The position numbers were made by a program, and so were the translations under genes. From positions 195,339 to 259,338 of the IMG/VR virus record IMGVR_UViG_3300046660_000716: a stretch of DNA of 64,000 bases, one strand, 5' to 3'. The notes below the pieces were generated by a model. That model searched no databases, was not told the origin of the DNA, and saw only the letters and a program-made list of their open reading frames with translations. Shown in pieces: positions 19,537-44,479 of the stretch (positions are counted from its first letter, which is position 1; each line of letters starts with the position of its first letter).

Positions 19537-19956
19537 ATGGCAAGCATAGAATTCGACGACGACCCATGCGCGGTGCAGCGCGCCACGGTCCAGCTCGGGG
19601 GCTGGCAGCTCATCGTGGGCTGCATGATGCTCAACAAGACGCACAGGAAGCAGGCCAGGCCGGCCCTGCAGCGCATCTTCGACCTCGCCCCGATACCGGA
19701 GGAGTTCGCGGACGTTCCGATGGAGGACCTGGTGGAGGCGATCAGGCCCTGCGGCCTGTACAACCGGCGCGCGCTGATGCTCAAGCGCATGACGGAGGAC
19801 TGGATGGCCGGCGTGGCCGTCGAGAAGCTCAGGGGCACCGGCCCCTACGCGTGGGACAGCTACGACATTTTCGTCCGCGGCATAGACCTCGAGCCGCGCC
19901 CGGACATGGACGCCGAACTTGTCCGTTACTTGGAGCACAGGAGAACAGAGCGTTAG
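19537..19956 (+). CDS. MBD4-like HhH-GPD DNA glycosylase
   Basis: WQLIVGCMMLNKT...IRPCGLYNRRA...LRGTGPYAWDSYDIF parallels the MBD4 catalytic domain (WKLLIATIFLNRT, LKPLGLY, LHGIGKYGNDSYRIF); catalytic Asp retained; GGAG RBS favours the 19537 start. Confidence 0.85.
   Translation: MASIEFDDDPCAVQRATVQLGGWQLIVGCMMLNKTHRKQARPALQRIFDLAPIPEEFADVPMEDLVEAIRPCGLYNRRALMLKRMTEDWMAGVAVEKLRGTGPYAWDSYDIFVRGIDLEPRPDMDAELVRYLEHRRTER
19944..19955 (+). promoter_or_regulatory. Putative late promoter AACAgagcgtTA
   Basis: Motif overlaps the glycosylase stop codon, 33 nt upstream of the next ATG. Confidence 0.6.
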
Positions 19957-19987
19957 TCCGATTCCACTCAACGAAAAGACCCACACC

Positions 19988-21802
19988 ATGACCATCATCA
20001 GCGATATCGCCGGAGTAATCGGCGACGTACAGAAAGCGCTCGGCTCCATGGCCCAAGCCAAGAATCGCCTCACCGACGGCGGCCAGCAGGCCGCGGACGA
20101 GAAGCGGTTCTTCGAGCGCCCGATGGCGTCCGTCGCCCGCTCGGCCAAGAAGAGCATCCTCTACTTCCCGGTCGTCATCTCCGAGAGCCTGAGCGCCGAG
20201 ACGGCGGCCACCGTGGCCAAGGCCGTCCAGGTGCGCGCCGCGGAGTACGTCCGCCTGTGGGTGTCCAACATGGACCCCATCTCCAGCGTCGGCCCGAATT
20301 CCGGCAAGAACGGCATCGTCGACGCGCTGCGCGGCGCCACCCTGAAGGACGCGTTCCTGAAGGACCCGGAGTCCGTGACCGAGCACACCGCCGCGGTGCA
20401 CGCACTGCTGCGCACCAGGATGTCCGAGCTGGTGGAGCACTGCTTTCCGGAGGACGGTCTGCGCCAGCCTCTGTTCGAGGCAATCCCGGGCGGCCCTAAG
20501 GGCGGCAAGCCGGGTGTAGGCGTCCCAGGTAGCAATATCCCGGGCGTCGCACCGTTCGCCCATCTTGGCAAGCCGGCCGGTCCTGCGTCCCAGTACCAGT
20601 CGGCCACCAGCCGCTCGAACACCGGCAAGACGCCGGCCGAGCAGCTCGACGCCGCCAAGAAAATTTTTTCCAACGGCACCCTCACGGGCCGCGAGGAAGC
20701 GAAGAAGATGGTCGCGCAGATCATGCGCCAGGGCGACAAGGGCATTATCCAGGACATCAAGGACGCCGGCCTGGGCTCGCTCGTCGACCAGCTCGAGACC
20801 GAGATGCACGACAAGCTGAAGCAGGACGCCGAGAACCACCCGTCGCTGGCGGACAAGAAGCGGCTTGACGCGGCCCTGCAGAGCGACATCCTCCGCTCGA
20901 AGGAGATGGTCGACACCGCCATCCGCCTCGCCACCAAGGCGACGCCCCAGTCCCGCGACGCCGCGATCCGCGCCGTCCAGGAGATCATGGCCGCCAACGA
21001 CGAGACCGACCTCGCACGCCTGCGCGCCGACAAGAACACCCGCGACATCGTGGAGATGCTCGAGAAGCTCCCGCCCGGCGTGATCGAGGACGGCTCCTAC
21101 GACATCACCCGCACCGGCAACACGGTGAACGTGGCAAGCAACGTCGACTTCAACAAGGTCAACCAGTTCCTGCCCGTGCTGCTCGACCTGACGGTCCGCT
21201 ACCAGACCGGCTCCGGCGGCATCTCGACCGTGACCGACCACCTGGTCATGGGCGTGAAGGGCGTCGCCCACCCGGTCCCGAGCATGGACCTGGTGACCGG
21301 CCTCGGCACCGCCCTGCAGCGCGACAACCTCGTGCTCCAGTTCTTCCGCATGACCTCCGGCGAGACCTCCTTCGTCAAGGACTTCGTGCTGAACCTGGGC
21401 GTGGCCAAGACCCGCGCGTCCGGCCGCACCGCGACCGGCACCAAGGTGCTGGAGACCCTGCGCCGCCAGGCCGAGTGGAACGACCGCCGCGGCAACTGGG
21501 TGATCGCCTCGATCTCCAAGCGCGGCTTCGTGCCTCCGACCACCACCATCTGCGTCACCGCGGACGAGGTGGACAAGATCCGCACGCTGTACGGCGTGGA
21601 CTTCACCAAGCCGAGCGCCGTGCGCGCCCTGATGCAGAGCCACAACCTGATGGGCTTCATGATCGTGGACGAGGCAATCGGCTTGGTGCGGGTGTTCGAG
21701 GACGGCGACGACGACTTCGACCGCCTGCCGATCGCGACCCTGAAGACCCAGGGCAAAGAGACGTCCGTCAAGGACATCATGACCATCCTGGCAAGGAGCT
21801 AA
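19988..21802 (+). CDS. Virion structural protein (about 604 aa)
   Basis: SVARSAKKSILYFPVVISES and PTTTICVTADEVDKI patterns recalled from conserved jumbo-phage structural genes; late promoter upstream; start trimmed to ATG 19988. Confidence 0.6.
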   Translation: MTIISDIAGVIGDVQKALGSMAQAKNRLTDGGQQAADEKRFFERPMASVARSAKKSILYFPVVISESLSAETAATVAKAVQVRAAEYVRLWVSNMDPISSVGPNSGKNGIVDALRGATLKDAFLKDPESVTEHTAAVHALLRTRMSELVEHCFPEDGLRQPLFEAIPGGPKGGKPGVGVPGSNIPGVAPFAHLGKPAGPASQYQSATSRSNTGKTPAEQLDAAKKIFSNGTLTGREEAKKMVAQIMRQGDKGIIQDIKDAGLGSLVDQLETEMHDKLKQDAENHPSLADKKRLDAALQSDILRSKEMVDTAIRLATKATPQSRDAAIRAVQEIMAANDETDLARLRADKNTRDIVEMLEKLPPGVIEDGSYDITRTGNTVNVASNVDFNKVNQFLPVLLDLTVRYQTGSGGISTVTDHLVMGVKGVAHPVPSMDLVTGLGTALQRDNLVLQFFRMTSGETSFVKDFVLNLGVAKTRASGRTATGTKVLETLRRQAEWNDRRGNWVIASISKRGFVPPTTTICVTADEVDKIRTLYGVDFTKPSAVRALMQSHNLMGFMIVDEAIGLVRVFEDGDDDFDRLPIATLKTQGKETSVKDIMTILARS

Positions 21803-21804
21803 GC

Positions 21805-22101
21805 GTGGAACTCATCGACGAAGAATCGCAGTGCATCGAGATGGGCCTCGAGCCCCTCGAAGAGGCCGGCGGCCTGGTGTCGTGGCTGAAGCGCCTCGTG
21901 CGCGGACGCGACGACGCCCTGCCGGCCGAGCTGACGGCCGAGGTCGGCAAGATCAAGACCAAGGCCGAGAAGGACAAAGCGCTGGAGGAGGTCGACGGGT
22001 ACATCTCGAAGACCGCCGACAGCAAGGACAGCGCCGTACGCATGTACGCCGTGAAACTCAAGGGGGTGCGCGCCAAGATCGCCGCGCTCTCCGTCAAGTA
22101 A
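21805..22101 (+). CDS. Putative internal head protein, LEEAGG-SW paralog 1 (98 aa)
   Basis: AAGGAG RBS + GTG; MELIDEESQCIEMGLEPLEEAGGLVSWL; aligns with three other ORFs in the window. Confidence 0.8.
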   Translation: MELIDEESQCIEMGLEPLEEAGGLVSWLKRLVRGRDDALPAELTAEVGKIKTKAEKDKALEEVDGYISKTADSKDSAVRMYAVKLKGVRAKIAALSVK

Positions 22102-22110
22102 GGAGCTAGC

Positions 22111-22647
22111 ATGGACCACGCAGCAATCAACGAAGCCGCGGAATGCATCGGCCTGGGCATCGATCCGGACAACGAAATGCTGGACGAGATCGACGCACTG
22201 GACGAGGCCGGCGGAATCGTATCCTGGCTGGCGCGCGCCTACACGGGCAAGGACAAGGACCTGCCCGCCGAGATCGAGAAGGAGCTGGAGAGCATCAAGA
22301 CGAAGGAAGCCAAGGAGAAGATGCTGGCGGACATCGACGACTTCATCAAGGAGGCCGAGGCGTCCGCCGCCACGAACGCGATGGACAAGCGGGCTCCCAA
22401 CGACCTCGGCAAGGGCTTCGCCATGCCCGGCAGCGAGAAGTACAAGGCTCGTATGGCCTGGATGCGCAAGAACGCGCACACCAACGCGCTGGGCGTCGGG
22501 CACGGCCAGTACGGCCACCACCTCGCGGCGGGCGCGGTCGGCAACATCGTCAAGCGCATCAATGCCCTCGACGGAACGATCGACAAGTACATCGCCGAGC
22601 TGAAGAAGGTCCGCGCCAAGGTGGCGGCCCACAAGGTGGAGGGCTAA
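22111..22647 (+). CDS. Putative internal head protein, LEEAGG-SW paralog 2
   Basis: AAGGAG RBS; acidic leader ending ALDEAGGIVSWL; shared IKTK..K...L..ID.FI and YI..L..VRAKV motifs. Confidence 0.85.
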   Translation: MDHAAINEAAECIGLGIDPDNEMLDEIDALDEAGGIVSWLARAYTGKDKDLPAEIEKELESIKTKEAKEKMLADIDDFIKEAEASAATNAMDKRAPNDLGKGFAMPGSEKYKARMAWMRKNAHTNALGVGHGQYGHHLAAGAVGNIVKRINALDGTIDKYIAELKKVRAKVAAHKVEG

Positions 22648-22650
22648 CCC

Positions 22651-23535
22651 GTGAACATGACCGGCATCCCAGTAATCGGCGCTCTCATCGAGCGCCTCCG
22701 TCGCCGCTCTGACCACGAGAGCGTCAAAGCCGCAATGGCTTCGCGCGGCGACGTCACCCGCGTCGAGGGCTACGCCAAGATGTCCGAGTGCCTGGACCGC
22801 CTCAGCATGCTCGACGCCGGCTCCGGCTCGCTCGGCAAGCCGCTGACCGTCGCCAAGCGCGTGCGCGCCGTGCTGATCAAGCAGAAGCCGGCGTTCACCC
22901 AGGCGTTCAACCCGTCCGGCAGCGAGGCGACCCGCCTCATCTACGCCAACGCGGTGGCCGGCCTGTGGCACGTCACCTCGCTGCTGTGCGCCGAGGGCGT
23001 GACCTTCATGAAGGGCGGCGACGGCACCTACGGCCCGATCGTGAACCGCGGCGCGGTGGACGGCATGGCCGGCTCCGTGGTGGTCACCCGCCTGGAGAAG
23101 TTCGCAGACGCGGCCGAGAAGTACGGCTTCGACCAGGTCGTCACGGAGACGGCCCAGATGGTCGAGAACGAGACCATGCACGAGGCGATCCCGTTCATCG
23201 TCGGCGCGGGCCTGGCCGTGACCGGCCTCGCCGCGATGCTGCTGGTCGCGCGCGACCTGGCCGAGAAGTTCTACTCGCTCCGCGGCACGTTCTCGCGCTG
23301 GCTCGAGGTCCAGGCCCGCTTCCTGGACATGAACGCAGCGACGCTCAACCGCGACGCGTCCCGCAACAAGCAGAGCGAGTACGCCGAGAAGCTGCGCGCC
23401 CTGGCGGACCGCATCAAGGTGGACGATGCGGACACCGAGAAGGACGCGAATGCGGCCATTCGCCAGGACGACAAGGAACTCGCGGCGGCCCAGACCGGCG
23501 CCGCGCCGAGCTCCGCCGGATCCCGGCTGCTCTAA
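22651..23535 (+). CDS. Virion structural protein with a hydrophobic segment
   Basis: 294 aa; internal TMHE|AIPFIVGAGLAVTGLAAMLLV; same operon as the head-protein paralogs. Confidence 0.65.
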   Translation: MNMTGIPVIGALIERLRRRSDHESVKAAMASRGDVTRVEGYAKMSECLDRLSMLDAGSGSLGKPLTVAKRVRAVLIKQKPAFTQAFNPSGSEATRLIYANAVAGLWHVTSLLCAEGVTFMKGGDGTYGPIVNRGAVDGMAGSVVVTRLEKFADAAEKYGFDQVVTETAQMVENETMHEAIPFIVGAGLAVTGLAAMLLVARDLAEKFYSLRGTFSRWLEVQARFLDMNAATLNRDASRNKQSEYAEKLRALADRIKVDDADTEKDANAAIRQDDKELAAAQTGAAPSSAGSRLL

Positions 23536-23561
23536 ACATGCGCGGACCATGATTCCCTACT

Positions 23562-23573
23562 AACAGGGGGATA
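23562..23573 (+). promoter_or_regulatory. Putative late promoter AACAgggggaTA
   Basis: Intergenic motif match, 115 nt upstream of the 327-aa gene. Confidence 0.7.
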
Positions 23574-23688
23574 GCGGGTCTGCGCATTCAACGGAGTCGG
23601 GCGCAGGTCGGCCCCGCGTCCGTCATCCGTCGCTAGCACACACAACTCCCATTTTTTTCACCTCCCAAGTTCGAACTAAGGAGCATCC

Positions 23689-24672
23689 ATGATTCTCGAA
23701 AATTACAACCCGGCCGCCATCGCCAGCGAAGAGCTGGTCGAGTCCGCAGACTTCGCGGGCGACACCGGCGAGTTCGCAGAGCTGACCGTCGCCGGTCTGA
23801 GCGAAATGCACAACCTGACCATCGCTCTGGCTCGCTTCGAGCACAAAGCGCTGACCGAAGGCACCGACGAATCGAAAACCTTGATCGAAGCCGCCGTCGG
23901 CGAGTTCTTCGCCAAGGCAGCCGAGACCGTCAAGAAGTGGTGGGCATCGTTCATCGCTTGGCTGGGCTCCATGTGGACCCGCATGAAGGACGCCTTCGTC
24001 AAGCGCGAAGAGTGGCTGGGCCGCAACAAGTCGGCAATCAGCGGCGCGACCGCCGAGCAGCTGAAGGACATCAAAGCCTCGATCGGCTCGGAAGTCCTGA
24101 ACACCAACTTCGCCGATGTCGCCTCGAAGGCCATCAACGAAGCCAAGGCAGTCATCGCTGCAGCCGGCAAGACCACCGCCGCCGAAGGCAAGTCCTTCAA
24201 AGAGCGCGCCCAGGAAGCCATCACCAAGCACCTGGCCAAGCGCGATGCGAAGAACTCGATCGGCAAGAACGTCCACGACAGCCTGATCGGCGAGTCGAAG
24301 GAAGTCGAAGTCAACTCCGGCCTGGTCGGTAAGCTGATCTCGACCGCAGAAGCCACCTTCAAGGCAGTCGGCCAAATCGGCGGCGCCAAGATGGTTGCCG
24401 ACGCAGCCGTGAAAGAAGCCGAAGGTCTGGCCCACGTCACCGGCGGCGACAAAGCTGACATCAACGCACGCATCAGCGCGCTGCGCGACGTCGGCCACCT
24501 GGTCCAGGCGACCATCTCGGCCCACGCTTCGGCCATCAGCACCGCCAACGGCCAGGTCATGCCTGTGCTGGTGCGCATCGCTGGCGCCGCTGGCAAGAAG
24601 GAAAAGGAGCCTAAAGCCGCTCCTGCAGCAGCGACCAACGAAAGCGGCTCGCTGCTGGACGCTTACCTGTAA
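23689..24672 (+). CDS. Abundant internal head protein-like (acidic propeptide + amphipathic helix)
   Basis: Strong AAGGAG RBS; acidic leader with LVE, LTE and LIE sites followed by FFAKAAETVKKWWASFIAWLGSMWTRMK, like phiKZ-type internal head proteins; GAA/AAA/GCT-rich codons suggest high expression. Confidence 0.7.
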   Translation: MILENYNPAAIASEELVESADFAGDTGEFAELTVAGLSEMHNLTIALARFEHKALTEGTDESKTLIEAAVGEFFAKAAETVKKWWASFIAWLGSMWTRMKDAFVKREEWLGRNKSAISGATAEQLKDIKASIGSEVLNTNFADVASKAINEAKAVIAAAGKTTAAEGKSFKERAQEAITKHLAKRDAKNSIGKNVHDSLIGESKEVEVNSGLVGKLISTAEATFKAVGQIGGAKMVADAAVKEAEGLAHVTGGDKADINARISALRDVGHLVQATISAHASAISTANGQVMPVLVRIAGAAGKKEKEPKAAPAAATNESGSLLDAYL

Positions 24673-24700
24673 TACGCCCCCGGGCGTGAGCAGGCTGATT

Positions 24701-24726: not shown

Positions 24727-24730
24727 TTTC

Positions 24731-27317: not shown

Positions 27318-27704
27318 TTACTTGTCTTCGATCTTGATCGCATTGACGCGCGCTTCGAGTTTGTCCATCGCTTTGATGTACTCTTCGGTCGTGCCGTTGT
27401 TCTTCTTGATCAGGCGCCCGACGATCCCCAGCACGACCCACATCGGTCCGATCAAGAAGGCGGCCAGCTGACCCCCCGTCAGGGTCTTCGCTTGCTTCCT
27501 GAACTTGGCGATGTCGGCCAAAATACGATCCTTGTCCTTCTCGGTGCGGATCTTCTTGATCTCTGCCTCGATGTCGTCCGGCAGGCTGGTGTCCGAGCCG
27601 CTCAACCAGCGCGTCAGCCAGGATACCAGGCCGCCGGCCTCTTCCAGGTTTTCCATGTCGATCGCGTCGGCGCCCTCGGTGAAGACGATGTTAGTATCCA
27701 GCAT
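27318..27704 (-). CDS. Putative internal head protein, LEEAGG-SW paralog 3
   Basis: NLEEAGGLVSWL, IRTEKDKDRILADIAKF, EEYIKAMDKLEARV; central hydrophobic hairpin. Confidence 0.85.
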   Translation of the reverse strand: MLDTNIVFTEGADAIDMENLEEAGGLVSWLTRWLSGSDTSLPDDIEAEIKKIRTEKDKDRILADIAKFRKQAKTLTGGQLAAFLIGPMWVVLGIVGRLIKKNNGTTEEYIKAMDKLEARVNAIKIEDK

Positions 27705-27726: not shown

Positions 27727-27738
27727 TACGTGGTTGTT
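27727..27738 (-). promoter_or_regulatory. Putative late promoter AACAaccacgTA
   Basis: Intergenic motif match upstream of paralog 3. Confidence 0.65.
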
Positions 27739-33625: not shown

Positions 33626-33637
33626 AACACACCACTA
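33626..33637 (+). promoter_or_regulatory. Putative late promoter AACAcaccacTA
   Basis: Intergenic motif match upstream of the gp25-like gene. Confidence 0.65.
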
Positions 33638-33701: not shown

Positions 33702-34127
33702 ATGGCAAGCCAAGCTGGTAAGGACGAGTTCGTCCTACAGTTCTCTGACACGAACAGCATCGAGACCATGACTGGTCCAGAGGCTGACGCTCGACGCATC
33801 CGCAACGTCTTGTTCGGACACGGGCGCGCCGGAGACTTCAAACTGGGAATCGACATCCAGTCGAACCTGTTCGAGTTCGGGGACTCCAAGACCCTCGAGC
33901 GCATAGCGAGCGACGCCAGGGAGGCGATCGGCACGTACTGCAAGGACGTGGACGTCAAGGAGCTCACCACGGCCATGCTGCCGGCCGACCAGGACCCGAC
34001 CGGGCGCAACAACGTCTCCCTGGTGATTGCGATCTCGATCGGCACTCCCTCCGGCGCCCCATACGACTTTGCGCTCGTGGCGACAAAGACCGCCAAGAAA
34101 ACCGTGATCTCGACTTTGGTTCTCTAA
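33702..34127 (+). CDS. Baseplate gp25/W-like subunit
   Basis: 141 aa; RRIRNVLF...FKLGIDIQSNLFEF...IASDAREAIGTYC matches the gp25 layout. Confidence 0.7.
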   Translation: MASQAGKDEFVLQFSDTNSIETMTGPEADARRIRNVLFGHGRAGDFKLGIDIQSNLFEFGDSKTLERIASDAREAIGTYCKDVDVKELTTAMLPADQDPTGRNNVSLVIAISIGTPSGAPYDFALVATKTAKKTVISTLVL

Positions 34128-36122: not shown

Positions 36123-37937
36123 ATGAACGACAAGCTCAGCATTCGCCCGGCAGCGGGCAGCCACCTCGAAGCCGCTACCACCCTGGTAGCGCAGCACAAT
36201 GCAAACAAGGCTGCGGACGAGGTGGCAGCGGCGCCGCTGCCGAAGATCACCAAGCCTGCGTTCGAGGGTCCACGCAGCAACGTGGTGGCCGGCGACGCGC
36301 ACGCGGTGGCGATCCGCTCGGCGCTGAACACGATCGCTCGCATCGTGGGTCGCACCCTCGGCCCGCATGGCTCGAACACCCTGGTCCGCTCCGAGAGCGG
36401 CTCGCACTTCGCGACCAAGGATGGCTACACCGTCTTGCAACGCACCACGTTCGTGCAGGAGATCGCCACGATGGTCCTGGACCACGTGCGCTCGGTCAGC
36501 CGCACCATGGTGCGCAAGGTTGGCGACGGCTCCACCAGCGCGGTCGTCATGGCGGACTCCCTGTACGACACCATCATCGACACCTCGGTGCTGCGCGACT
36601 TTCCGCCCGGCGCCGTCCAGGCCGTGCTGTCGGCCATCGCCGACGTCCTGGTGGAGAAGATCCGCGAGCGCGGCACCAGCGCCATCTGCGCGGCCGATCT
36701 GCTGACCGTGGCGACCATCTCCGCCAACAACGATCCGGCCATCGGCGCCCTGATCGCCAACGCCTACGAGGCGGGCGGCGAGGAAGCCAATGTATTCGCC
36801 GAGATCGGCACGGGCGACCGCACCGTCGTGCGCAAGGAGCCGGGCTACCGCGTCATGCGCGGCATGGTCCACGAGGCGTTCGCCAACGAGGTCAGCGCCG
36901 AGGGCAGCCGCGCCACGCGCTGCCGCCTGCACGACGTCCGCGTCCTGATCTACGACGGCACCGTGGACCAGTCCACGTTCAACACGCAGATCGCCCCGGT
37001 CATGAACGGCTGCATCGAGCTCGGCGTCGCGTTCGCGCTGGTCGCGCGCGACTACGGCGACGACGTGGTGAAGATCGTCGCCGAGTTCATGCGCAAGAGC
37101 CCCGGCATCAAGCTGGTCATGCTCGACCACGCCGGCGCCACCCGCCGCGGCATGGCTCGCATGGGCGACCTCGCGGCCGTGCTGGGCACGACCGTCGTCA
37201 TGCCGGGCACCAAGATCGACGAGGACCGCCTGGGCTTCGCGGCCGAGGTGCGCTCCGGCCCGAGCGACACGGTGTTCGTGCTGGCGGGCCAAGGCACGGA
37301 CGTGGCCGAGCGCGTGGCTCAGCTGCGCGAGCAGGCCGACCGCATGGACATGAACAACCACGACGAGACCCAGGCCGACGAGATCGCAGAGCTGCGCGCC
37401 CGCATCCGCGCCATGCTGGGAAGCGAGGTCACGATCTCGGTCGGCGGCGCCACCGAGCAGGAGAAGCAGGCCCTGCACTACCTGATCGAAGACTCGATCC
37501 TGGCCGTGCGCGCCGCGAACCGCTCCGGTGTGGTCGAGGGCCTGGGCATGACGGCGCAGCGCGTGCTGGCGGACAGCTCGTCCGACGTGGCCGTCGAGAG
37601 CCTGAAGATCGCCGCGACCCGCACCTCGCTGGGAATGGGCCGCCTATCGGGCCTGGTAGCACACATGATGGTGGCCGTCCAGGCAGCATACCTCGCGGCC
37701 TCCTCCAAGGTGCTGGAGAACGCGCACCTGGATGCCGGCGAAATCATCGGCACCTGCCTGCGCGACGGGAAGTGCTTCGACGTGATGACCGGCGAGTACA
37801 CGGTCGGCGCCACCGTTCTCGCCCCCACGGACACCGACGTGGAGGTCCTGCGCGGCGCCATGTCCATCGTGAGCCTGCTCGTCAGCAGCAACCAGACCGT
37901 CCTGATCCGTCCATCGGCCGGCCTGGGACTCGACTAA
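36123..37937 (+). CDS. groEL: Phage-encoded GroEL-like chaperonin
   Basis: TLGPHG, TKDGYTV, VGDGSTS, ISVGGATEQE, GVVEGLG, GEYTV...PTDTDVEVLRGAMSIVSLL; no GroES nearby. Confidence 0.92.
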   Translation: MNDKLSIRPAAGSHLEAATTLVAQHNANKAADEVAAAPLPKITKPAFEGPRSNVVAGDAHAVAIRSALNTIARIVGRTLGPHGSNTLVRSESGSHFATKDGYTVLQRTTFVQEIATMVLDHVRSVSRTMVRKVGDGSTSAVVMADSLYDTIIDTSVLRDFPPGAVQAVLSAIADVLVEKIRERGTSAICAADLLTVATISANNDPAIGALIANAYEAGGEEANVFAEIGTGDRTVVRKEPGYRVMRGMVHEAFANEVSAEGSRATRCRLHDVRVLIYDGTVDQSTFNTQIAPVMNGCIELGVAFALVARDYGDDVVKIVAEFMRKSPGIKLVMLDHAGATRRGMARMGDLAAVLGTTVVMPGTKIDEDRLGFAAEVRSGPSDTVFVLAGQGTDVAERVAQLREQADRMDMNNHDETQADEIAELRARIRAMLGSEVTISVGGATEQEKQALHYLIEDSILAVRAANRSGVVEGLGMTAQRVLADSSSDVAVESLKIAATRTSLGMGRLSGLVAHMMVAVQAAYLAASSKVLENAHLDAGEIIGTCLRDGKCFDVMTGEYTVGATVLAPTDTDVEVLRGAMSIVSLLVSSNQTVLIRPSAGLGLD

Positions 37938-37950: not shown

Positions 37951-38247
37951 ATGGAACCGACACCCGAACAGCTGGAGATGCTCCAGTTCGTTGAGAACTA
38001 CGCCGACAAGTACGGCGTAGAGATCGTCACCCTGGACGACATGGACGCCGCGATCGTCGGCGTCGTCGAGTCCGGCATGGTGTCCCCGCGCCTGGCCTAC
38101 GACTACAACAAGTGCGTCGAGATCATCCTGGAGCGCGACGGCGGCATCCGCGCCGACGCCGCCGAGTTCGTCGACCACAACATGGTCAACGGCGACGTGC
38201 GCGACGACTGGCCGGTCTTCCTCTTCCGTCCGGAGGCGAAAGCATGA
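37951..38247 (+). CDS. Conserved phage hypothetical protein
   Basis: AAGGAG RBS; LDDMDAAIVG...YDYNKCVEIL...AAEFVDHN...PVFL pattern. Confidence 0.7.
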   Translation: MEPTPEQLEMLQFVENYADKYGVEIVTLDDMDAAIVGVVESGMVSPRLAYDYNKCVEIILERDGGIRADAAEFVDHNMVNGDVRDDWPVFLFRPEAKA

Positions 38248-38696
38248 GCGCCGAGACCGTGAAGGACATCGTCATCTTCGACCTGGACGGCACGCTGTCC
38301 AACCCCGAGAACCGCACGCACTTCCTGCTGGGCGCCAAAAAGGACTGGCGCGCGTTCTACAAGGCGTGCGGCGGCGACGCTCCGATCAGCAACACCGTGG
38401 CCATCTTCAAGGCGCTGAAGATCTCGAAGCTGTGCTGGGTCGTTACCGGCCGCGAGGACACGGTCAAGCCCGAGACCCTCCAGTGGTTCGCCGAGCACGG
38501 CATCGAGCCCGACAACATGCTCATGCGCCCCGAGGGCGACTACCGCACGGACACCGTCCTGAAGAAGGAGCTGGTGACTAGCGGTCAGATCCCATTCGAT
38601 CGCATCCTCTGCGTGTTCGAGGACCGCAACTCGGTCGTCGACATGTGGCGCGAGATGGGCATCACGTGCTACCACGTGGCGCCAGGAGACTTCTAG
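38244..38696 (+). CDS. HAD-family phosphatase (T4 PseT 3'-phosphatase domain-like)
   Basis: IFDLDGTL, VTGRE, LMRPEGDYRTDTVLK, FEDRNSVVDMWREMGITCYHV; ATGA coupling. Confidence 0.9.
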   Translation: MSAETVKDIVIFDLDGTLSNPENRTHFLLGAKKDWRAFYKACGGDAPISNTVAIFKALKISKLCWVVTGREDTVKPETLQWFAEHGIEPDNMLMRPEGDYRTDTVLKKELVTSGQIPFDRILCVFEDRNSVVDMWREMGITCYHVAPGDF

Positions 38697-38706
38697 GAGA
38701 TAGACC

Positions 38707-39501
38707 ATGCAGCCGCAAGAACCCATGACCGTGCGCGACCTGATCACGAACCCGACGGGTCCGTACTCGAGGCAGGTCGCCGCCCGCTACACCATCCGCG
38801 ACGCGCTCAAGGCCAAGTTTCTGGCCGCGATGAAGGACCCCGCCCGCCGGAAGAGGTTCCAGGCGTCGGTCACGGGCGTGGCGCCGGACTTCGTCGTCTG
38901 GCTCCGCGTTCCCTCCGAGGAGTACGACGTTGTGTACGACGTCGTCCTGCAGCTGCACTTCCCCGAGGGCGTCCGCGCCCTGTCGAGCGCCGAGATCAAG
39001 CTGTACTGCAACTCGCCCTCCTGGGTGTTCACCACGGGCTACGCCGCCCGCGAGGCCGGGATCCTCTTCCCCGGCTGGGAGGGGGCGCTCGGCCGGGCCG
39101 CCAAGGAGAAGCCGAAGGTCACGAACCCGAACCTGGACGTGGGCTTCGACAAGGTGGTGCAGCAGGGCCTCCTGTGGGCGATGGGGCCGGGAGGGCTCCT
39201 GAGCATGGGGGACCTCCAGCGGGCGACCGTGGCCAAGTCCCTGGCTCCGGATCCGCGCGCGCCGGGCCTCTCGGCAGAGGCGAAGCTCTTCGAGTACAAC
39301 CGGGCGAAGGACAAGCACGACGCCCAGAAGCGGACCGAGAAGGCTTCGGCCAAGGCGGCCAAGGAGCTGGACGAGAAGCGCCGGAAGGCCGACGCCGCCG
39401 GCAAGCGCAACGCAACGAAAGCGGCAAAGACCGCATCGGCGTCCAAGACGGTCAAGGCCCGCAAGAGCACGACCGCGCGCAGCAGCACGAAGGCCCGCTA
39501 G
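38707..39501 (+). CDS. Conserved jumbo-phage hypothetical protein with a basic C-terminal tail
   Basis: 264 aa; VPSE..YDVVLQLHF, KLYCNSPSWVFT; Lys/Ala-rich tail. Confidence 0.7.
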   Translation: MQPQEPMTVRDLITNPTGPYSRQVAARYTIRDALKAKFLAAMKDPARRKRFQASVTGVAPDFVVWLRVPSEEYDVVYDVVLQLHFPEGVRALSSAEIKLYCNSPSWVFTTGYAAREAGILFPGWEGALGRAAKEKPKVTNPNLDVGFDKVVQQGLLWAMGPGGLLSMGDLQRATVAKSLAPDPRAPGLSAEAKLFEYNRAKDKHDAQKRTEKASAKAAKELDEKRRKADAAGKRNATKAAKTASASKTVKARKSTTARSSTKAR

Positions 39502-39512
39502 GTTGCGTAACG

Positions 39513-39522
39513 TGATATAATT
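39513..39522 (+). promoter_or_regulatory. Extended -10 element TGaTATAAT
   Basis: Perfect TGnTATAAT in a GC-rich genome, about 60 nt upstream of the sigma-like gene. Confidence 0.6.
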
Positions 39523-39582
39523 CCTTCGCATCCGCAGTGCGCTGGGCCGCACAAAAAACTAGGAAAGCAGAGAAAGAGTCAT

Positions 39583-41100
39583 ATGACAGCATCGGAAGAG
39601 GGATCCGTCACGACGGGGCCAACCGTAAGCCTCGTTGAGGGTAACATCAGCATCGATTTCTCGGGGCACTACGGCAGGCCCATCGAAGACTACAACCATT
39701 TCAGCATGAGCCGGAAGCGCAACTTCTCGGCGATGGCCGAGCGCTGCGCGGGGGGACTCGCGGCGCTCCTGGAGAACCCGGACTTCGCGTGGGGCCTGCT
39801 GAGCCTGCGCTACGACATCTCGCTGCCGGAGGACGACCCGGACTTCGTGACCGAGGAAGCCCTGGCGCAGCGCGTCGCCGACCTGATCGACGAGCGCTCG
39901 GTCGCCACGATCGGCGCGATCGTGGACCACGCCTACGCGGCCGAGGACGTCGACATCGATACCGACCACGGCGGTAAGGCGAACGAGGAGCTGCAGTTCA
40001 CGAACGACCACGCCCTGATCATCCTGCGGTGGACCTTCGCGTGCATGTCCTGTGCTCCGGTCATCACGGCGTTCATGGACGAGCGCGACATTCAGGCGCG
40101 AAACAGCATGAACGTGATCATGGGCGTCTTTACGGCCCTGCTGCGCCGGTTCGAGCCGGCCGACGGGTCCACGGACATCCTGGCCAAGATCCGCAAGCTC
40201 GTCGAGTCGCGCGTCCTCCAGACCCGCTACTCGGACAAGGTGATCTGGAACTACCTGCGCAACGTGGCCACGGACCCGCACATCTTCATCGACCAGCTCT
40301 TCCGCAAGTTCATCGCCGAGGGCATTCCGAAGCTGGAGCAGGGCACGAACGTGATCAAGTTCTTCCACACGTTTCTGCGCAACCAGATCAAGTTCCAGTT
40401 CACGGCCAAGTTCCCGATCTCCTACCGCCCCGTGCGGCAGGACGTCATGGACCCCGAGGGCGTGGGCGCCATGGAGCACCTGGAGAACGAGCTGGTCCGG
40501 CGCGACGAGTCGGCGGTGGTCATCGGGGAGCTGGTGTGCAGCCAGGCCCTGATGCAGACCTACCGGGACGTCGAGTACGAGCCCTCCGAGGAGGAGATCC
40601 TCCACTGGAGCGACATGGTCCGCGAGCACGGCATCAACGAGTGGCAGCGCGGCATGGTCACGAAGTTCTTCCTGCCCCGCATCGGGCGCGTCGAGCACAT
40701 CCTGACCAGGTCGCTCAGCGACTACGTCCGCATGTTCCTCGTCACCCGCCGCTGGCTGGTGCGCAACGACCTGCCGGCCCTGGCCGCGTACATGTCGGCG
40801 CGCGTCACCGACGGCCAGGACGCCCGCAAGCTGATGGCCCGCAAGAAGTTCATCCGCGAGTTCATCGACAGCGACGCCTACCGGGCGCTGCTTGGCGGCT
40901 GCTTCTCGACCACCAGCCAGAGCGTCATCGACAGCGGCGTCATCATCGAGATGATCAGCGCTGTCCACGTCGGCAACTTCGCCCTCCTCCCGGAGTACGG
41001 CGAGGCGGTCGAAGAGGGCCCTCGCCCGACCGTCACCCACCGCGTCGAGACGATCGCGCAGGAGGTCCTGCGCTTCATCGCCCACATCGCGCGGCCGTAA
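39583..41100 (+). CDS. Probable non-virion RNAP promoter-specificity (sigma-like) subunit, AR9 gp226 / phiKZ gp68-like
   Basis: 505 aa, helical. KIRKLVESRVLQTRYSDKVIW and IPKLEQGTNVIKFFHTFLRNQIKF resemble recalled gp226-family segments. Lies a few genes from the chaperonin, as AR9 gp226 does from gp228. Confidence 0.55.
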   Translation: MTASEEGSVTTGPTVSLVEGNISIDFSGHYGRPIEDYNHFSMSRKRNFSAMAERCAGGLAALLENPDFAWGLLSLRYDISLPEDDPDFVTEEALAQRVADLIDERSVATIGAIVDHAYAAEDVDIDTDHGGKANEELQFTNDHALIILRWTFACMSCAPVITAFMDERDIQARNSMNVIMGVFTALLRRFEPADGSTDILAKIRKLVESRVLQTRYSDKVIWNYLRNVATDPHIFIDQLFRKFIAEGIPKLEQGTNVIKFFHTFLRNQIKFQFTAKFPISYRPVRQDVMDPEGVGAMEHLENELVRRDESAVVIGELVCSQALMQTYRDVEYEPSEEEILHWSDMVREHGINEWQRGMVTKFFLPRIGRVEHILTRSLSDYVRMFLVTRRWLVRNDLPALAAYMSARVTDGQDARKLMARKKFIREFIDSDAYRALLGGCFSTTSQSVIDSGVIIEMISAVHVGNFALLPEYGEAVEEGPRPTVTHRVETIAQEVLRFIAHIARP

Positions 41101-41115
41101 AGCACCACCGCAGGA

Positions 41116-41125
41116 CGATATCATT
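41116..41125 (+). promoter_or_regulatory. Putative early or sigma70-like -10 element CGATATCATT
   Basis: Intergenic; same 10-mer as 18918. Confidence 0.45.
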
Positions 41126-41233
41126 TCGGGGATCGGGCTCGCGCTCGATCTCCGACTTTCACTTGTGCAGAGGGAAACACATGAGCAACACCAGCAGCAT
41201 CTGCCCAACAACCGAACAACCCGGAGCGCCCAC

Positions 41234-41590
41234 ATGAGAATTGAACGCCTCAAGATGGGCGTCCGCGTGCGGGTAATACTCAACCGCACGGAGGCGAGGG
41301 AGGCCGGCCTGGCCGCGCTGGTCGCTTCCGGCGCGCTGGCAAAGGACCACACGCAGCGGCCCCGCGCCGCCAAAATCTACGTCGGCGGCATAGGCCGCGG
41401 CGAGGGCGACCTGCACGTCAGACCGTCCGACCTGGAGCGGGAGGCGGTCAAGGTCGCCGCCCGCCAGATCGCCGTCCCCGGAGAAGCCAACTTCCGGGTC
41501 GGTCTGGACGACAAGGGCGAGATCGCCGGCGCCACGTTCCAGTGGTTCGAGGGCGCCGACAAGGGCGCCGCCGAGCTGGTGGCCGACTAG
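41234..41590 (+). CDS. Hypothetical protein
   Basis: 118 aa from ATG 41234; coupled (ATGA) to an 18-codon upstream ORF at 41181. Confidence 0.6.
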   Translation: MRIERLKMGVRVRVILNRTEAREAGLAALVASGALAKDHTQRPRAAKIYVGGIGRGEGDLHVRPSDLEREAVKVAARQIAVPGEANFRVGLDDKGEIAGATFQWFEGADKGAAELVAD

Positions 41591-41604
41591 CGGAGGGGAT
41601 GCGC

Positions 41605-42678
41605 ATGAGCGACGTCATCCAAACGGTCATCGATGCAATCGAGCGATCCGGACGCCCTCTGAGCATCCGGAACGGCGAGTGCAACACGCGCTGCGGGTTC
41701 TGCGGCGATTCCAGCAAGAACGCTTTCAGCAAGCACTTCTACATGAACCTGACCGCGCCCCACCCGTGCTTCTGCCAGCGGTGCGGCTTCCGGTCGGGCC
41801 ACCTCACGGTCGAGATCCTGGAGGCCCTCGGGGCGGCCGAGCGCGACGCCTCGGTGTACGCGCGCACCGTCGAGAAGAGCGAGCGGCGGTCGGGCAGGAG
41901 CAGGCGCAAGCCTCCTTCCCTGGCGGCCGGCAACTCCAGGCTCATCGTGCCGCAGCCGGACCGCTCCAACGCGGACGACGCGGCCGCGATCGGATACGTG
42001 GAGTCGAGGATTGGGGGACCGATCCTCACGCCGAGGGAGATCGAGCGCTACCGGATCGTCACCTGCGGCCTGTACGGCTTCCTGGAGATGAACGGGGTGA
42101 ACGAACTGACCATCCACGAACGCGAGGCCGACAGGCTGAACGAGACGTGCGTGGGCTTCCTCTCCGCCGACGAGAGCTACGTGATCTTCCGCACCATGGA
42201 CGCGGGCCACGTGGCGCGCGGCGGCCGGCGCTACACCAACTACAGGATCTTTCCGGAGTGGGAGGGCAGCAAGTCGTTCGCGTGCAGGTCCGACGTGAAC
42301 CTGCTGGCCCCCCGGCACGGGGTGGTGTGCTCGGAGGGCATCCTGGACCTGATCCAGATCGAGCGGCAGTTCTACCCGGACCGCCGCTGGGAACCGGACC
42401 ATATCGGCGTCGCCACCTGCGGAGCCAGCCACGAGACGATCCTGCGGCAGCTCCTGAGCCTCGGGATCCTGTCCCAGGACGTCAGCCTGTACATCGACGA
42501 CAGGGACGACTGCACGCCCGACCCGGCGATGATGAGCCGGGTGAGGAAGATTCCGGAGACCAGCCCGTTCTTCCAGACCCCGCACTTCAAGATGAGCGTG
42601 TACAGAAACGGGCACCCCGAGGAGAAAGACTTCGGCGTGCAACCAGACAGACTTAGCCGGGTGACCGCCCGGCTGTGA
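41605..42678 (+). CDS. DNA primase (Zn-finger + Toprim; T4 gp61-like)
   Basis: RCGFCGDSSKN...CFCQRCG Zn-binding domain; Toprim VVCSEGILD and LYIDDRDD; GGAGG RBS. Confidence 0.8.
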   Translation: MSDVIQTVIDAIERSGRPLSIRNGECNTRCGFCGDSSKNAFSKHFYMNLTAPHPCFCQRCGFRSGHLTVEILEALGAAERDASVYARTVEKSERRSGRSRRKPPSLAAGNSRLIVPQPDRSNADDAAAIGYVESRIGGPILTPREIERYRIVTCGLYGFLEMNGVNELTIHEREADRLNETCVGFLSADESYVIFRTMDAGHVARGGRRYTNYRIFPEWEGSKSFACRSDVNLLAPRHGVVCSEGILDLIQIERQFYPDRRWEPDHIGVATCGASHETILRQLLSLGILSQDVSLYIDDRDDCTPDPAMMSRVRKIPETSPFFQTPHFKMSVYRNGHPEEKDFGVQPDRLSRVTARL

Positions 42679-42688
42679 AGGAGCGCAA

Positions 42689-43210
42689 ATGGTTGACAGG
42701 CAACGGCTCGACGAGAAGCTGACCCGGCAGGGCCGGCTGGACTACGACTGGCTCAAGTCAATGGGCTACACCATGGCGCGCAACGCCATGGCTGGTGTGT
42801 GGGAAGTCATCGAGGGCAACGACAAGGACAATGGGCTGGTCTTCGCCCAGCCCACGCTGCAGGAGGCCGTGACGCACGCGGCCGAAGAGCTCGAATGGCA
42901 CGCCAGTACCGAGCGCCCAGCCGATCGGTTCGACGCCTTCGTGAAGCGGCTGGAGAACGTGCCGGACAATACGTGGTGGTGCATCATCGTTGTGCTGGTC
43001 GTGCTGGCTGTGTCAGGGGTGCTCGTTAAGCGCAGCGCCGCCGCGCATGAGGCCGCCGCGCGACGGACCGCCGTCTACATGGAAATGCACAACTGCCGAC
43101 GCACCGGCTTCGTGGGCACCCAGGGCCGCGTCCAGTCGACCAACGCGTGCGACAACGGACTGTGGCTGTACGACGAGCTCGAGAAGCTCGCAAAGAAGGA
43201 ATCCGAGTAA
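42689..43210 (+). CDS. Hypothetical membrane protein
   Basis: AAGGAG RBS; one TM segment (WWCIIVVLVVLAVSGVLV); C-terminal Cys pair. Confidence 0.7.
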   Translation: MVDRQRLDEKLTRQGRLDYDWLKSMGYTMARNAMAGVWEVIEGNDKDNGLVFAQPTLQEAVTHAAEELEWHASTERPADRFDAFVKRLENVPDNTWWCIIVVLVVLAVSGVLVKRSAAAHEAAARRTAVYMEMHNCRRTGFVGTQGRVQSTNACDNGLWLYDELEKLAKKESE

Positions 43211-43212
43211 GA

Positions 43213-43803
43213 ATGCAGGAAATGAACATGATACGGCTGATGATGGCCGGCGGCAGAGCCGTCAGCCTGTCGTCAGTCCTGCTCGCGCTGGACGGCGAGC
43301 GAACGAAGACAATGCCAAGGAGAGCAGAGATGATGGAAGTCAAACCGACGGTGAGCGTGCGGCGCCTGCAGGACCGCCTGCGCGCCACGCTGTCCCAGAT
43401 GGGCGTTGCCGAGGGTAGCAAGGCCGCGCTGAAGCACGAGGTGGCGTTCCTCCAGGGGGCCGCGGAAGCGCTCAGCGAGAACGTGCCGCCCGCCGTCCTG
43501 ATGTGCGCCCTCGCGGGTCGCTCGATCCTGGGGCTGGAGTCCAAGGACGAGCCGGCTCCAGCCAAGGACGAAGTGGTCCACCTGGTGGTGGACACCGTGC
43601 AGGGGTTCTCCCACCGCCTGGTGGTCAACGGCGAGGCCGGTGCGGAAGCCGGCTACGCGGACGTCGCGGAGAACGGCGTCTACCGGGCGGGCATCCCGGA
43701 CTACTGGGGCGCGGACGCTCCCCGCGTGTGGAAGGTCGTCCCGGTCGAGTACGCCGTGGACGACTCGCAGACCGGCGCCGCCGCGCCTGCAAAAACGAAT
43801 TGA
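43213..43803 (+). CDS. Hypothetical protein
   Basis: In-operon ORF; start uncertain (43213, 43222 or 43228). Confidence 0.55.
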   Translation: MQEMNMIRLMMAGGRAVSLSSVLLALDGERTKTMPRRAEMMEVKPTVSVRRLQDRLRATLSQMGVAEGSKAALKHEVAFLQGAAEALSENVPPAVLMCALAGRSILGLESKDEPAPAKDEVVHLVVDTVQGFSHRLVVNGEAGAEAGYADVAENGVYRAGIPDYWGADAPRVWKVVPVEYAVDDSQTGAAAPAKTN

Positions 43804-43805
43804 TA

Positions 43806-43817
43806 AACACAGAACTA
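43806..43817 (+). promoter_or_regulatory. Putative late-type promoter AACAcagaacTA
   Basis: Intergenic motif match 26 nt upstream of dcd. Confidence 0.65.
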
Positions 43818-43843
43818 TACAGTTCAAATAAAGAGGAACCCGA

Positions 43844-44479
43844 ATGTTCATCCCCGACTTCCAGATCGAGGCCCTCTGCGGCGACGGCTATCCGCGCACC
43901 TGGTCCCCGTCCGGCGGCCCCCACGTGGGCCAGGAGTTCCCCATCGAGAACGCCGGTCCCCTGATCTCGCCGTTCGCGGCCGAGTTCCTGGGCGCGGCGT
44001 CGTACGACATCCAGATCGGCAACAAGTTCGCGAGCCCCCTGGAGATGGAGGCGTATGTCATGCGCAGCGGCCAGGTCGTCCGCAAGCTGCCTCCGAGCAA
44101 GGAGATCGACGGTCTGCTCCTGAAGCTGCACGCGGACGAGCGCATCGATATCATTCTGCAGCCCAAGCAGCCGGTGCTGTGCCACTCGACCGAGTACGTG
44201 CGCATCCCGCCGCACCTGGTCGGCCTGCTGACCGTGCGCAGCAGCTTCGCCCGCGACTGGATCGACCACTCGTCGGCCACCTCCGTGTGGCCCGGCTTCC
44301 AGGGCAACATCACGTTCGAGCTGACCAACAGCAGCCCGTCCACGTACCGCCTGCGCTCGGGCGCGCGCGCCCTGCAGCTCGCCTTCGCCAAGATGGCGGC
44401 GGTCCCGGCCAAGCCGTACAACGGCGTGTACCAGAAGCAGGAAGGTCAGCTGCACAGCCGCATGGTGCACGAGAAGTAA
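43844..44479 (+). CDS. dcd: dCTP deaminase
   Basis: ASYDIQIG, RSSFAR, VWPGFQGNITFEL, ALQLAF, PYNGVYQKQ. Confidence 0.9.
   Translation: MFIPDFQIEALCGDGYPRTWSPSGGPHVGQEFPIENAGPLISPFAAEFLGAASYDIQIGNKFASPLEMEAYVMRSGQVVRKLPPSKEIDGLLLKLHADERIDIILQPKQPVLCHSTEYVRIPPHLVGLLTVRSSFARDWIDHSSATSVWPGFQGNITFELTNSSPSTYRLRSGARALQLAFAKMAAVPAKPYNGVYQKQEGQLHSRMVHEK

Follow-up and report, generated by a model that had tools for sequence, protein, structure and literature searches.

The Bacillus phages AR9 and PBS1 (Takahashivirus), Yersinia phage phiR1-37 and the Staphylococcus S6-type jumbo phages carry dU-DNA and encode two multisubunit RNA polymerases (RNAPs). In AR9, the early consensus ends in ATATTAT-(6N)-G+1 and the late consensus is AACA-(6N)-T-A/G (PMC5312081). 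Its gp226 is the sigma-like promoter-specificity subunit of the non-virion RNAP, and the change V206G lets the enzyme accept T (PMC9209446). Concerning the biosynthesis of dU-DNA, the characterised dU phages are defined by a Dcd plus a Dtm or Dtt, and the three characterised Dcds (PBS1, DSS3_VP1 and phiR1-37) belong to the dCMP-deaminase family (PMC12697855). Three further systems are relevant for comparison: the MBD4 glycosylase domain of human and mouse (PDB 3IHO, 4EVV, 6VJW), the E. coli dCTP deaminase and the bifunctional Dcd:dut enzymes of the dUTPase superfamily, and Xanthomonas phage Xp12 and its relatives, which contain 5-methylcytosine DNA.

We analysed a window of 64,000 nucleotides (positions 195,339 to 259,338 of IMG/VR record IMGVR_UViG_3300046660_000716), which belongs to a complete phage genome of 259,338 bp with 65.6% GC from a rhizosphere metagenome. 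The phage is a distant member of the AR9/PBS1 - phiR1-37 - S6 lineage, is uncultured and has no known host. Its DNA most likely carries deoxyuridine in place of thymidine (probability of about 0.65); this is strongly inferred but is not supported by chemical or read-level evidence, and it would be unprecedented at this GC content. The features of the window are presented in Table 1.

Table 1. Features of the analysed window; positions are counted from its first nucleotide
Position	Strand	Feature	Details
14510-15361	-	ORF downstream of a late-type motif	
15429-15440	-	Late-type promoter motif AACATCACCATA(G)	Upstream of 14510-15361
17997-18875	-	Homologue of an AR9 virion structural protein	
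18896-18907	-	Late-type promoter motif AACAGTCGGATA	32 nt upstream of 17997-18875
19537-19956	+	MBD4-type HhH-GPD DNA glycosylase	139 aa from the ATG; a TTG at 19525 is also open; no MBD domain and no Fe-S cluster
27318-27704	-	ORF downstream of a late-type motif	
27727-27738	-	Late-type promoter motif AACAACCACGTA	34 nt upstream of 27318-27704
33626-33637	+	Late-type promoter motif AACACACCACTA(G)	Upstream of ORF 33702-34127
36123-37937	+	Cpn60/GroEL-type chaperonin	Pfam Cpn60; PHROG groEL E 7e-82; 28% identity to AR9 GroEL; synteny anchor shared with AR9
38112-38696	+	HAD phosphatase of the PNKP type	Pfam HAD_PNKP E 7e-26; no counterpart at this position in AR9; second candidate nucleotide or DNA-end phosphatase
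38707-39501	+	Conserved hypothetical protein	Homologue of the AR9 gene between groEL and gp226 (E 2e-21 to AR9 196041-196685)
39515-39528	+	Early (virion-RNAP type) promoter motif ATATAAT-N6-G	68 nt upstream of the gp226-like gene
39583-41100	+	Homologue of AR9 gp226	PDB 7S01_A (AR9 gp226), E 1.4e-38; 2.1bis helix YSDKVIWNYLRN
41118-41131	+	Early-type promoter motif ATATCAT-N6-G	Upstream of ORF 41165-41590
41542-42678	+	DNA primase	PHROG primase E 4e-43; AR9 hit E 2e-25; syntenic with the AR9 primase next to gp226
43806-43817	+	Late (non-virion-RNAP type) promoter motif AACACAGAACTA (AACA-N6-TA)	38 nt before the DCD ATG; predicted start site is the final A, 26 nt before the ATG
43844-44479	+	dCTP deaminase (DCD) of the dUTPase superfamily, E. 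coli Dcd type	Pfam DCD E 5e-19; PHROG dCTP deaminase E 8e-34
45483-46133	+	RNase H	Pfam RNase_H E 3e-22
47649-49202	-	Virion RNAP beta'-C subunit homologue	36% identity to AR9 220743-221975, E 2e-84

The preliminary description had reported AR9-type promoter motifs, a dCTP deaminase with its own AACA promoter and an MBD4-like glycosylase, all of which were confirmed. Its statement that known dU phages are AT-rich is only roughly true, as Roseophage DSS3_VP1 has 47.5% GC over its first 50 kb. Its proposal of a uracil-DNA (or U-sensing) phage is supported by inference, but is not proven: neither of the two conditions that it had named as speaking against the proposal holds, since there is no thymidylate synthase or separate dUTPase in the genome and the uracil pocket of the gp226-like protein is conserved.

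At least 52 genes are shared with AR9, including the MCP (40% identity) and all RNAP classes, although protein identities are only 22-45% and the GC content of AR9 is 28%. The local order groEL-x-[early promoter]-gp226-primase-...-deaminase is also conserved, and AR9 likewise has an early promoter directly upstream of gp226. A block of Cpn60-gp226-primase-DCD-RNaseH is conserved in the GC-rich relatives, with the same order in L047 and L048. In the phage collection searched, gp226 homologues are found only in AR9/PBS1-type, phiR1-37 and S6-type jumbo phages (21 records). Looking at the uracil pocket, V220, I221 and Y224 of the 2.1bis helix align with V206, I207 and Y210 of AR9 gp226. The discriminating residue is Val in 33 of 35 homologues and Ile in 2, never Gly or Ala; however, some gp226 homologues have Thr or Ser at this position, so the pocket can vary. 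The stacking Arg363 of beta-N is conserved, whereas AR9 beta-N K375 is not.

Both AR9 promoter classes are present and sort the genes as in AR9: ATAT[C/A/T]AT-N6-G precedes early genes and AACA-N6-T[A/G] precedes virion genes. The early core, which was not listed in the preliminary description, occurs 38 times against 6.1+-2.7 expected, and 36 of the 38 sites have the G. The AACA-N6-TA motif alone is only weakly over-represented (22 against 14+-5 expected), but three other measures support it. In sense upstream windows the N6 spacing is found 32 times, against 3 each for N5 and N7; 32 sites are in sense and 12 in antisense orientation; and AACA ranks first of the 256 4-mers for X-N6-TAG.

Concerning nucleotide metabolism, no ThyA, ThyX, separate dUTPase, UDG, CDA-fold deaminase or C5-methylase was found in the complete genome, and all 10 gp226-bearing IMG/VR records also lack ThyA, ThyX and Dut. 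The DCD has the metal-independent dUTPase fold, in contrast to the zinc CDA fold of the characterised dU phages. The equivalents of Ser111, Arg115 and Glu138 of the E. coli enzyme are conserved, but the Asp of the (I/V)DPG motif (motif III), which is homologous to the dUTPase catalytic Asp and whose role is documented (PMC5519681), is replaced by Trp. The same position is occupied by Trp in 15 and Met in 1 of the 16 aligned clade members, and by Gln or His in two further relatives. There is also a clade-specific N-terminal extension of about 40 residues. A homologue of the AR9 HAD deoxyribonucleotidase (gp150), the likely dTMP phosphatase, is located beside the DNA polymerase; it is present in AR9 and in 4 of 4 complete gp226-bearing genomes, and its best structural matches are 5'(3')-deoxyribonucleotidases. 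It is most likely the counterpart of Dtm_PBS1, but the equation of AR9 gp150 with Dtm_PBS1 rests on annotation and fold, not on a sequence match to the published accession. No homologue of Ugi or of any known UDG inhibitor was found, and no HAM1 or YfbR-type dT-clearing enzyme.

The glycosylase hits Pfam HhH-GPD (E 2e-8), and all 15 PDB sequence hits are MBD4 glycosylase domains (E 1e-9). An AF2 model (pLDDT 88.8) has MBD4 domains as its top 16 Foldseek hits (TM 0.75-0.83), although identity is only about 25%. The pocket 'AVQ' matches V448-Q449 of MBD4, the Tyr of 'GPYAWD' matches Y540 and the invariant Asp in 'MDAELVRYL' matches the catalytic D560, while Lys562 is not conserved. The finger motif 'LNK' matches L466-N467-R468; the R468K mutant is active (PMC12073362), and Arg is present in two orthologues, one of them from the close relative G001. 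AR9 has an annotated EndoIII/AlkA-type N-glycosylase which is not detectably related. Interestingly, the closest phage homologues (37-41% identity) lie in the base-modification module of Xp12 and its relatives. These are unrelated 64-kb siphoviruses with a ThyA-family dCMP methyltransferase module and without gp226 or multisubunit RNAPs, but they share the situation that deamination of the genome's cytosine form yields a legitimate genome base. An independent GC-rich gp226 lineage, G003, carries a different small mismatch-type (Mig/MutY-core) glycosylase, whereas the AT-rich relatives have no HhH-GPD hit. The MBD4-type enzyme is shared only with close relatives, however, and the correlation with GC content rests on two independent lineages.

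Based on homology, we propose that a virion RNAP transcribes the early genes, including the gp226-like gene, and that the non-virion RNAP with the gp226-like subunit reads 3'-UUGU-5' in the template strand of the late promoters, using the Val220/Ile221/Tyr224 and beta-N Arg pocket, which excludes a C5 methyl. Late transcription would therefore depend on uracil. Phage ribonucleotide reductase would supply dC nucleotides and the DCD would convert dCTP directly to dUTP; having lost the Asp that dUTPases need, it should not destroy its own product. The HAD enzyme would drain dTMP, and the phage is inferred to make no thymidylate itself. The weakest step concerns the glycosylase: in a dU genome a deaminated cytosine becomes a legitimate base, which is mutagenic above all at 66% GC, and the enzyme would remove U (or T) only when it is paired with G and leave A:U pairs untouched. 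It should also be noted that G003 has neither deaminase type.

The alternative that survives best, although it is unlikely, is that the phage is a thymine-DNA descendant of the dU lineage. In this case, the DCD would only boost the dUMP supply, via host Dut, for host thymidylate synthase; the gp226 homologue would tolerate T or read another feature; and the glycosylase would be a general T:G/U:G repair enzyme useful to any GC-rich genome. Genes for dcd of this fold occur in many presumably thymine-DNA phages and archaeal viruses, and the lack of a detected UDG inhibitor and the variation of the gp226 pocket also favour this view. The genome was assembled from a metagenome, although dU-DNA can fail common library preparations (PMC8323127) and the run metadata give no library type. 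T-containing palindromes (AGGCCT, AAGCTT) are avoided, but AR9 does the same. On the other hand, the discriminating Val and the whole 2.1bis helix are conserved, a conserved dTMP/dUMP-type nucleotidase would work against making dTTP, no ThyA, ThyX, DHFR-linked module or dUTPase occurs in any of 11 gp226-bearing genomes, and the DCD has specifically lost the dUTPase Asp. Moreover, the members of the lineage whose DNA has been analysed all appear to be dU phages, as is confirmed for PBS1 and phiR1-37 (PMC12697855).

A role of the glycosylase in conflict, either countering a host cytosine-deaminase defence by removing U:G lesions from phage DNA or attacking host DNA, is improbable. Its distribution among phages is sparse and patchy, as is typical of accessory conflict genes, and it lies at the edge of a structural-gene block and not in the nucleotide-metabolism block. 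In Xp12, however, it is embedded in the nucleotide-modification and replication module, it is conserved in G001, and repair of deaminase-inflicted U:G would be the same biochemical activity as that proposed above. Least likely is a different or additional pyrimidine modification, such as 5-methylcytosine (with the glycosylase repairing T:G from deaminated 5mC) or a post-replicative derivative of dU, since, despite the Xp12-type homologues and the ability of MBD4 to excise T and 5hmU as well as U opposite G, there is no ThyA-family enzyme, which pre-replicative 5-methyl or 5-hydroxymethyl pyrimidines need, and no C5 DNA methyltransferase, the gp226 pocket excludes C5 substituents on the -10/-11 uracils (PMC9209446), and the rest of the gene set is AR9-like and not Xp12-like.

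The virus record of which the window is the last 64 kb has a length of 259,338 bp and 65.6% GC; IMG/VR classes it as having terminal repeats, and CheckV rates it 100% complete. The exact direct terminal repeat is only 127 bp long and may be an assembly overlap; such a repeat is more typical of a circular assembly artefact than of a physical terminal redundancy. The only run holding the sequence in full is a rhizosphere metagenome, and a soil metagenome holds a small share. A megablast of the region against phages gave no match, so there is no close cultured relative. Because the high GC content makes raw ORF lists useless, genes were called by third-position GC; the resulting set is rough, with about 82% coding coverage. 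No tRNA genes occur anywhere in the 259 kb. The features discussed below are listed in the following table.

Coordinates of the features discussed in the text (G and L numbers are our designations for viral records and for loci or contigs, respectively)
Feature	Sequence	Coordinates	Strand	Remarks
MBD4-type glycosylase ORF	window	starts at 19537		ATG; a TTG at 19525 is also open
gp226-like protein	window	39583-41100		
DCD-family protein	window	43844-44479		AACACAGAACTA lies 38 nt upstream
Early-type motif ATATCAT-N6-G	window	44148-44161	+	inside the DCD coding sequence
Small acidic protein	window	44535-44909	+	124 aa, pI 4.5, directly after the DCD
Protein weakly similar to the AR9 tape-measure protein	window	1442-9049	+	2535 aa
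Back-to-back late-type motifs	window	1393 and 1402	both	precede the 2535-aa protein
Small acidic protein	own genome	152570-152845	+	91 aa, pI 4.2, just downstream of nvRNAP beta-N
Homologue of AR9 gp150	own genome	163067-163747		226 aa, beside the DNA polymerase
RyR and Acb2/Tad1 hairpin domain protein	own genome	168809-170290 (L034:6809-8290)	+	493 aa, outside the window
Ribonucleotide reductase and two NUDIX hydrolases	own genome	191035-194462 (L035:11035-14462)		outside the window
Exact terminal repeat	own genome	1-127 and 259212-259338		127 bp
MBD4-like glycosylase	Xanthomonas phage Xp12, MT664984.1	46973-47455 (L050:5878-6360)		unannotated
MutY-core/Mig-like glycosylase	IMG/VR record G003 (239 kb, 62% GC)	L023:1333-2022	+	229 aa
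DCD orthologue	JGI contig L048 (68% GC)	L048:13081-13731		called as a 96-aa product only

All the items named in the preliminary description, namely an MBD4-like glycosylase, a gp226-like protein, AR9-type promoter motifs and a dCTP deaminase with its own AACA promoter, are present. The glycosylase ORF encodes an HhH-GPD protein whose only PDB sequence matches are MBD4 glycosylase domains. A confident AF2 model (pLDDT 88.8) matches MBD4 domains at TM 0.75-0.83 over both full lengths, with Endonuclease III, Mig and MutY following far behind; the predicted fold is the minimal HhH-GPD fold without an Fe-S cluster. Concerning the residues whose roles are described in PMC12073362, the base-pocket Val-Gln (Gln449), the Leu-Asn-Arg finger and the Tyr540 equivalent are present. 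The intercalating Arg468 is Lys here and Arg in two orthologues, and the R468K mutant is active. An Asp which is invariant in 4 of 4 family members aligns with the catalytic D560. A word-based protein search for the glycosylase found only one relative.

The gp226-like protein matches AR9 gp226 (PDB 7S01_A) at E 1.4e-38 over residues 21-458. In about 50,700 phage records it finds only 21, all of which are AR9/PBS1-type Bacillus phages, phiR1-37, a Listeria jumbo phage and S6-type Staphylococcus jumbo phages. A local tblastn of our gene set against the annotated AR9 genome found 52 shared genes, including those of the major head protein (40% identity), sheath, terminase, DNA polymerase, topoisomerase II and SbcCD, and six RNAP subunit genes. 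Homologues of AR9 nvRNAP beta-N, beta-C and beta'-C, of vRNAP beta-N, beta'-N and beta'-C, and of gp077 were found, whereas nvRNAP beta'-N was not recovered in the rough gene set. The local order is the same in both phages; in AR9 it is groEL, hypothetical, early promoter, gp226, primase, nucleotide metabolism and deaminase. The phage is therefore a real, though distant, member of this lineage, which appears to hold all known dU jumbo phages.

The preliminary description had named a genome encoding dUTPase plus thymidylate synthase, and a gp226-like protein lacking the uracil-binding pocket, as evidence that would count against uracil DNA; neither was found. Pfam models searched in six frames over the complete genome find no ThyA and no ThyX, and the only dUTPase-fold hit is the DCD itself. 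Regarding the pocket, Fraser et al. (PMC9209446) showed that the -10 uracil is wedged between gp226 I207 and beta-N R363, that the V206 side chain would clash with a thymine methyl, that V206G makes the enzyme accept T and that Y210 stacks on -9G. In the HMMER alignment V206, I207 and Y210 correspond to V220, I221 and Y224 in an almost identical helix. Among 35 homologues the discriminating position is Val in 33 and Ile in 2. Beta-N R363 is also conserved, while K375 is not (it aligns with Ser, with an Arg adjacent), so that four of the five pocket residues are retained.

AR9 early promoters end in ATATTAT-(6N)-G+1, and its late promoters are AACA-(6N)-T-A/G (PMC5312081). The early-type core ATAT[ACT]AT, which the preliminary description had not listed, occurs 38 times against 6.1+-2.7 in first-order Markov simulations, and 36 of the 38 have G exactly six bases downstream. 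The plain late motif AACA-N6-TA is only marginally enriched genome-wide (22 vs 14+-5). As genome-wide X-N6-TAG enrichment was confounded by coding periodicity, we compared sense and antisense upstream windows instead: in the 150 nt upstream of genes, N6 spacing gives 32 sites against 3 each for N5 and N7, and 12 in antisense, and AACA is the best of all 256 4-mers before N6-TAG. Judged from sequence without transcript data, the two motifs divide genes as in AR9. The early motif precedes topoisomerase II, UvsX, nvRNAP beta-N and the gp226-like gene; the late motif precedes the tape-measure protein, virion structural homologues, the virion-RNAP beta'-N gene and the DCD. The early-type motif inside the DCD coding sequence could be due to chance, although AR9 is known to have internal promoters.

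In PBS1, DSS3_VP1 and phiR1-37 the dU pathway has been defined by experiment as a dCTP deaminase producing dUTP plus a dTMP phosphatase (Dtm) or a dTTP pyrophosphatase (Dtt) (PMC12697855). All three deaminases are zinc CDA-fold enzymes, and the authors state that they differ from the E. coli-type Dcd family. The genome studied here has no CDA-fold deaminase but has the E. coli-type DCD, which retains the equivalents of Ser111, Arg115 and Glu138, invariant in the clade; the column of the Glu is fixed by PDB 2V9X, which differs from the wild type (1XS1) at exactly this residue. The top PDB ‘dCTP deaminase’ hits (9LN0, 8Y1W) have Met at the deaminase Glu position, so they may be dUTPases, and they were not used to infer function. 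The Asp of the conserved (I/V)DPG motif is Trp here, and the protein is therefore an atypical member of the family. Of the 16 clade members aligned, 15 have Trp and one has Met; two further relatives have Gln and His, and only the outgroup keeps Asp. We infer by alignment that this Asp is homologous to the catalytic Asp of dUTPases, whose mutation leaves dUTPase practically inactive (PMC5519681). E. coli Dcd keeps the Asp yet is monofunctional, so presence of the Asp does not confer dUTPase activity, but its loss argues against such activity. From the sequence we infer that this enzyme deaminates dCTP and cannot hydrolyse the dUTP it makes.

The 226-aa protein beside the DNA polymerase is the homologue of AR9 gp150, which is annotated as a HAD 5'(3')-deoxyribonucleotidase and is also next to the polymerase. 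It is present in AR9 and in all four complete gp226-bearing IMG/VR genomes, and it has invariant HAD motifs. A six-frame search with Pfam PF06941 detected neither it nor AR9 gp150, and homology to AR9 plus a fold search were used instead. Its AF2 model (pLDDT 78.5) is closest to the cytosolic and mitochondrial deoxyribonucleotidases, the fold through which Dtm_PBS1 was recognised; that gp150 is the AR9 copy of Dtm_PBS1 is our inference. The genome also has a ribonucleotide reductase (a single 650-aa barrel-domain protein), followed by two divergently oriented 224-aa NUDIX hydrolases which could be further dNTP-pool editors, for example dTTP or dCTP pyrophosphatases. It also has a guanylate-kinase-like domain. 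It has no UDG-family gene, no C5-methylase, no HAM1 and no YfbR. There was no tblastn match to AR9 Ugi; such inhibitors are small, fast-evolving and of several unrelated kinds, so the absence of a homologue is weak evidence. Two small, very acidic proteins are only positional and compositional leads for a UDG or dUTPase inhibitor; AR9's Ugi lies next to its beta-N gene.

About 40 uncultured gp226 homologues of 30-75% identity exist, and IMG/VR holds 14 loci with 24-62% GC. None of 10 such records, four of them complete genomes of 239-320 kb, has ThyA, ThyX or a dUTPase. AR9 and the IMG/VR records G004, G008 and G009 carry the CDA-fold deaminase. The phage studied here and its relatives G001 (61% GC), L047 (61%) and L048 (68%) carry the Asp-less DCD in the same gene block, whereas a 29% GC relative does not. 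This looks like a non-orthologous replacement of the deaminase within a GC-rich sub-clade. In L048 tblastn aligns about 200 residues of the DCD orthologue; the gene call may be truncated, or the gene may be frameshifted in that contig.

Among the gp226-bearing records, HhH-GPD hits occur only in the GC-rich ones. G001 has an orthologue of the glycosylase (46% identity). G003, an independent GC-rich lineage, has a MutY-catalytic-core/Mig-like protein without MutY's C-terminal domain, which matches the G-T mismatch enzyme 1KEA over its full length; the same genome has neither the CDA-fold nor the dUTPase-fold dCTP deaminase. This rests on two independent lineages and is suggestive only; also, AR9 has an annotated EndoIII/AlkA-type glycosylase that the Pfam search missed. 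The closest phage homologues of the window's enzyme are in Xp12, which has 5-methylcytosine DNA (PMC7653180), and its relatives. The Xp12 protein (39% identity to the window's protein), for which the literature search found no paper mentioning it, is encoded between the replication genes and the HAD–thymidylate-synthase-homologue–dCMP deaminase–DHFR module, directly upstream of the latter, and is a plausible T:G repair enzyme for deaminated 5mC. In a 5mC genome deamination gives T, and in a dU genome it gives U; in both cases the product is a normal genome base, so only an enzyme that demands a G partner can repair it without attacking the genome. This fits the reasoning of the preliminary description, that a dU genome would need a mismatch-specific glycosylase to repair deaminated C, but remains an inference, and we regard the specific repair role of the glycosylase as tentative. 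The Xp12 hits also prompted the idea of 5mC in this phage, which was rejected as there is no ThyA-family enzyme and no C5-methylase.

The interpretation of the preliminary description, a GC-rich uracil-DNA jumbo phage, is supported as far as sequence can take it, and in the absence of chemical evidence we put the probability that this phage has dU-DNA at about 0.65. The genome was recovered from a metagenome, although dU-DNA can fail Nextera preparation (PMC8323127). The gp226-type subunit and the two promoter types are already known from AR9, whereas the Asp-less deaminase differs in family from those of PBS1, DSS3_VP1 and phiR1-37. Based on the records and papers examined here, uracil-DNA phages span 28-48% GC; a 66% GC example would show that dU genomes are not confined to AT-rich sequence space, and would raise directly the question of how such a genome resists C-to-U decay. 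The locus offers candidates for a new type of dU-pathway deaminase, a conserved Dtm, a phage MBD4-like glycosylase and a GC-rich set of uracil-dependent promoters. The uncultured relatives indicate an unrecognised soil clade, which may be under-sampled because dU-DNA resists common library preparations. gp226 with the Val pocket, plus absence of ThyA, ThyX and Dut, could serve as a marker set for predicting dU genomes in metagenomes.

It is possible, though in this full form less likely than not, that these soil and rhizosphere jumbo phages of 61-68% GC are the first GC-rich dU-DNA phage lineage, in which dUTP is made by a dUTPase-fold deaminase that has been disabled as a dUTPase, and cytosine deamination, which is invisible in uracil DNA, is repaired by an MBD4-type G-mismatch-specific glycosylase. 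As the same enzyme family would serve 5-methylcytosine phages such as Xp12, this reading suggests a general rule, that phages whose genome base equals the deamination product of their cytosine form carry mismatch-specific rather than base-specific glycosylases.

Outside the window, the 493-aa protein combines a RyR domain with a C-terminal Acb2/Tad1 hairpin domain (Pfam E 1e-7) and is a possible cyclic-nucleotide sponge against CBASS or Thoeris; an HNH endonuclease lies just upstream. We also examined whether GC-only palindromes show an avoidance that T-containing ones lack, but this does not discriminate, as the phage avoids both kinds and so does AR9, a proven dU phage. GGGCCC (10 observed vs 68 expected), AGGCCT (20 vs 115), AAGCTT (9 vs 33) and CTAG (105 vs 262) are strongly avoided across the whole genome, which hints at the host's restriction systems.
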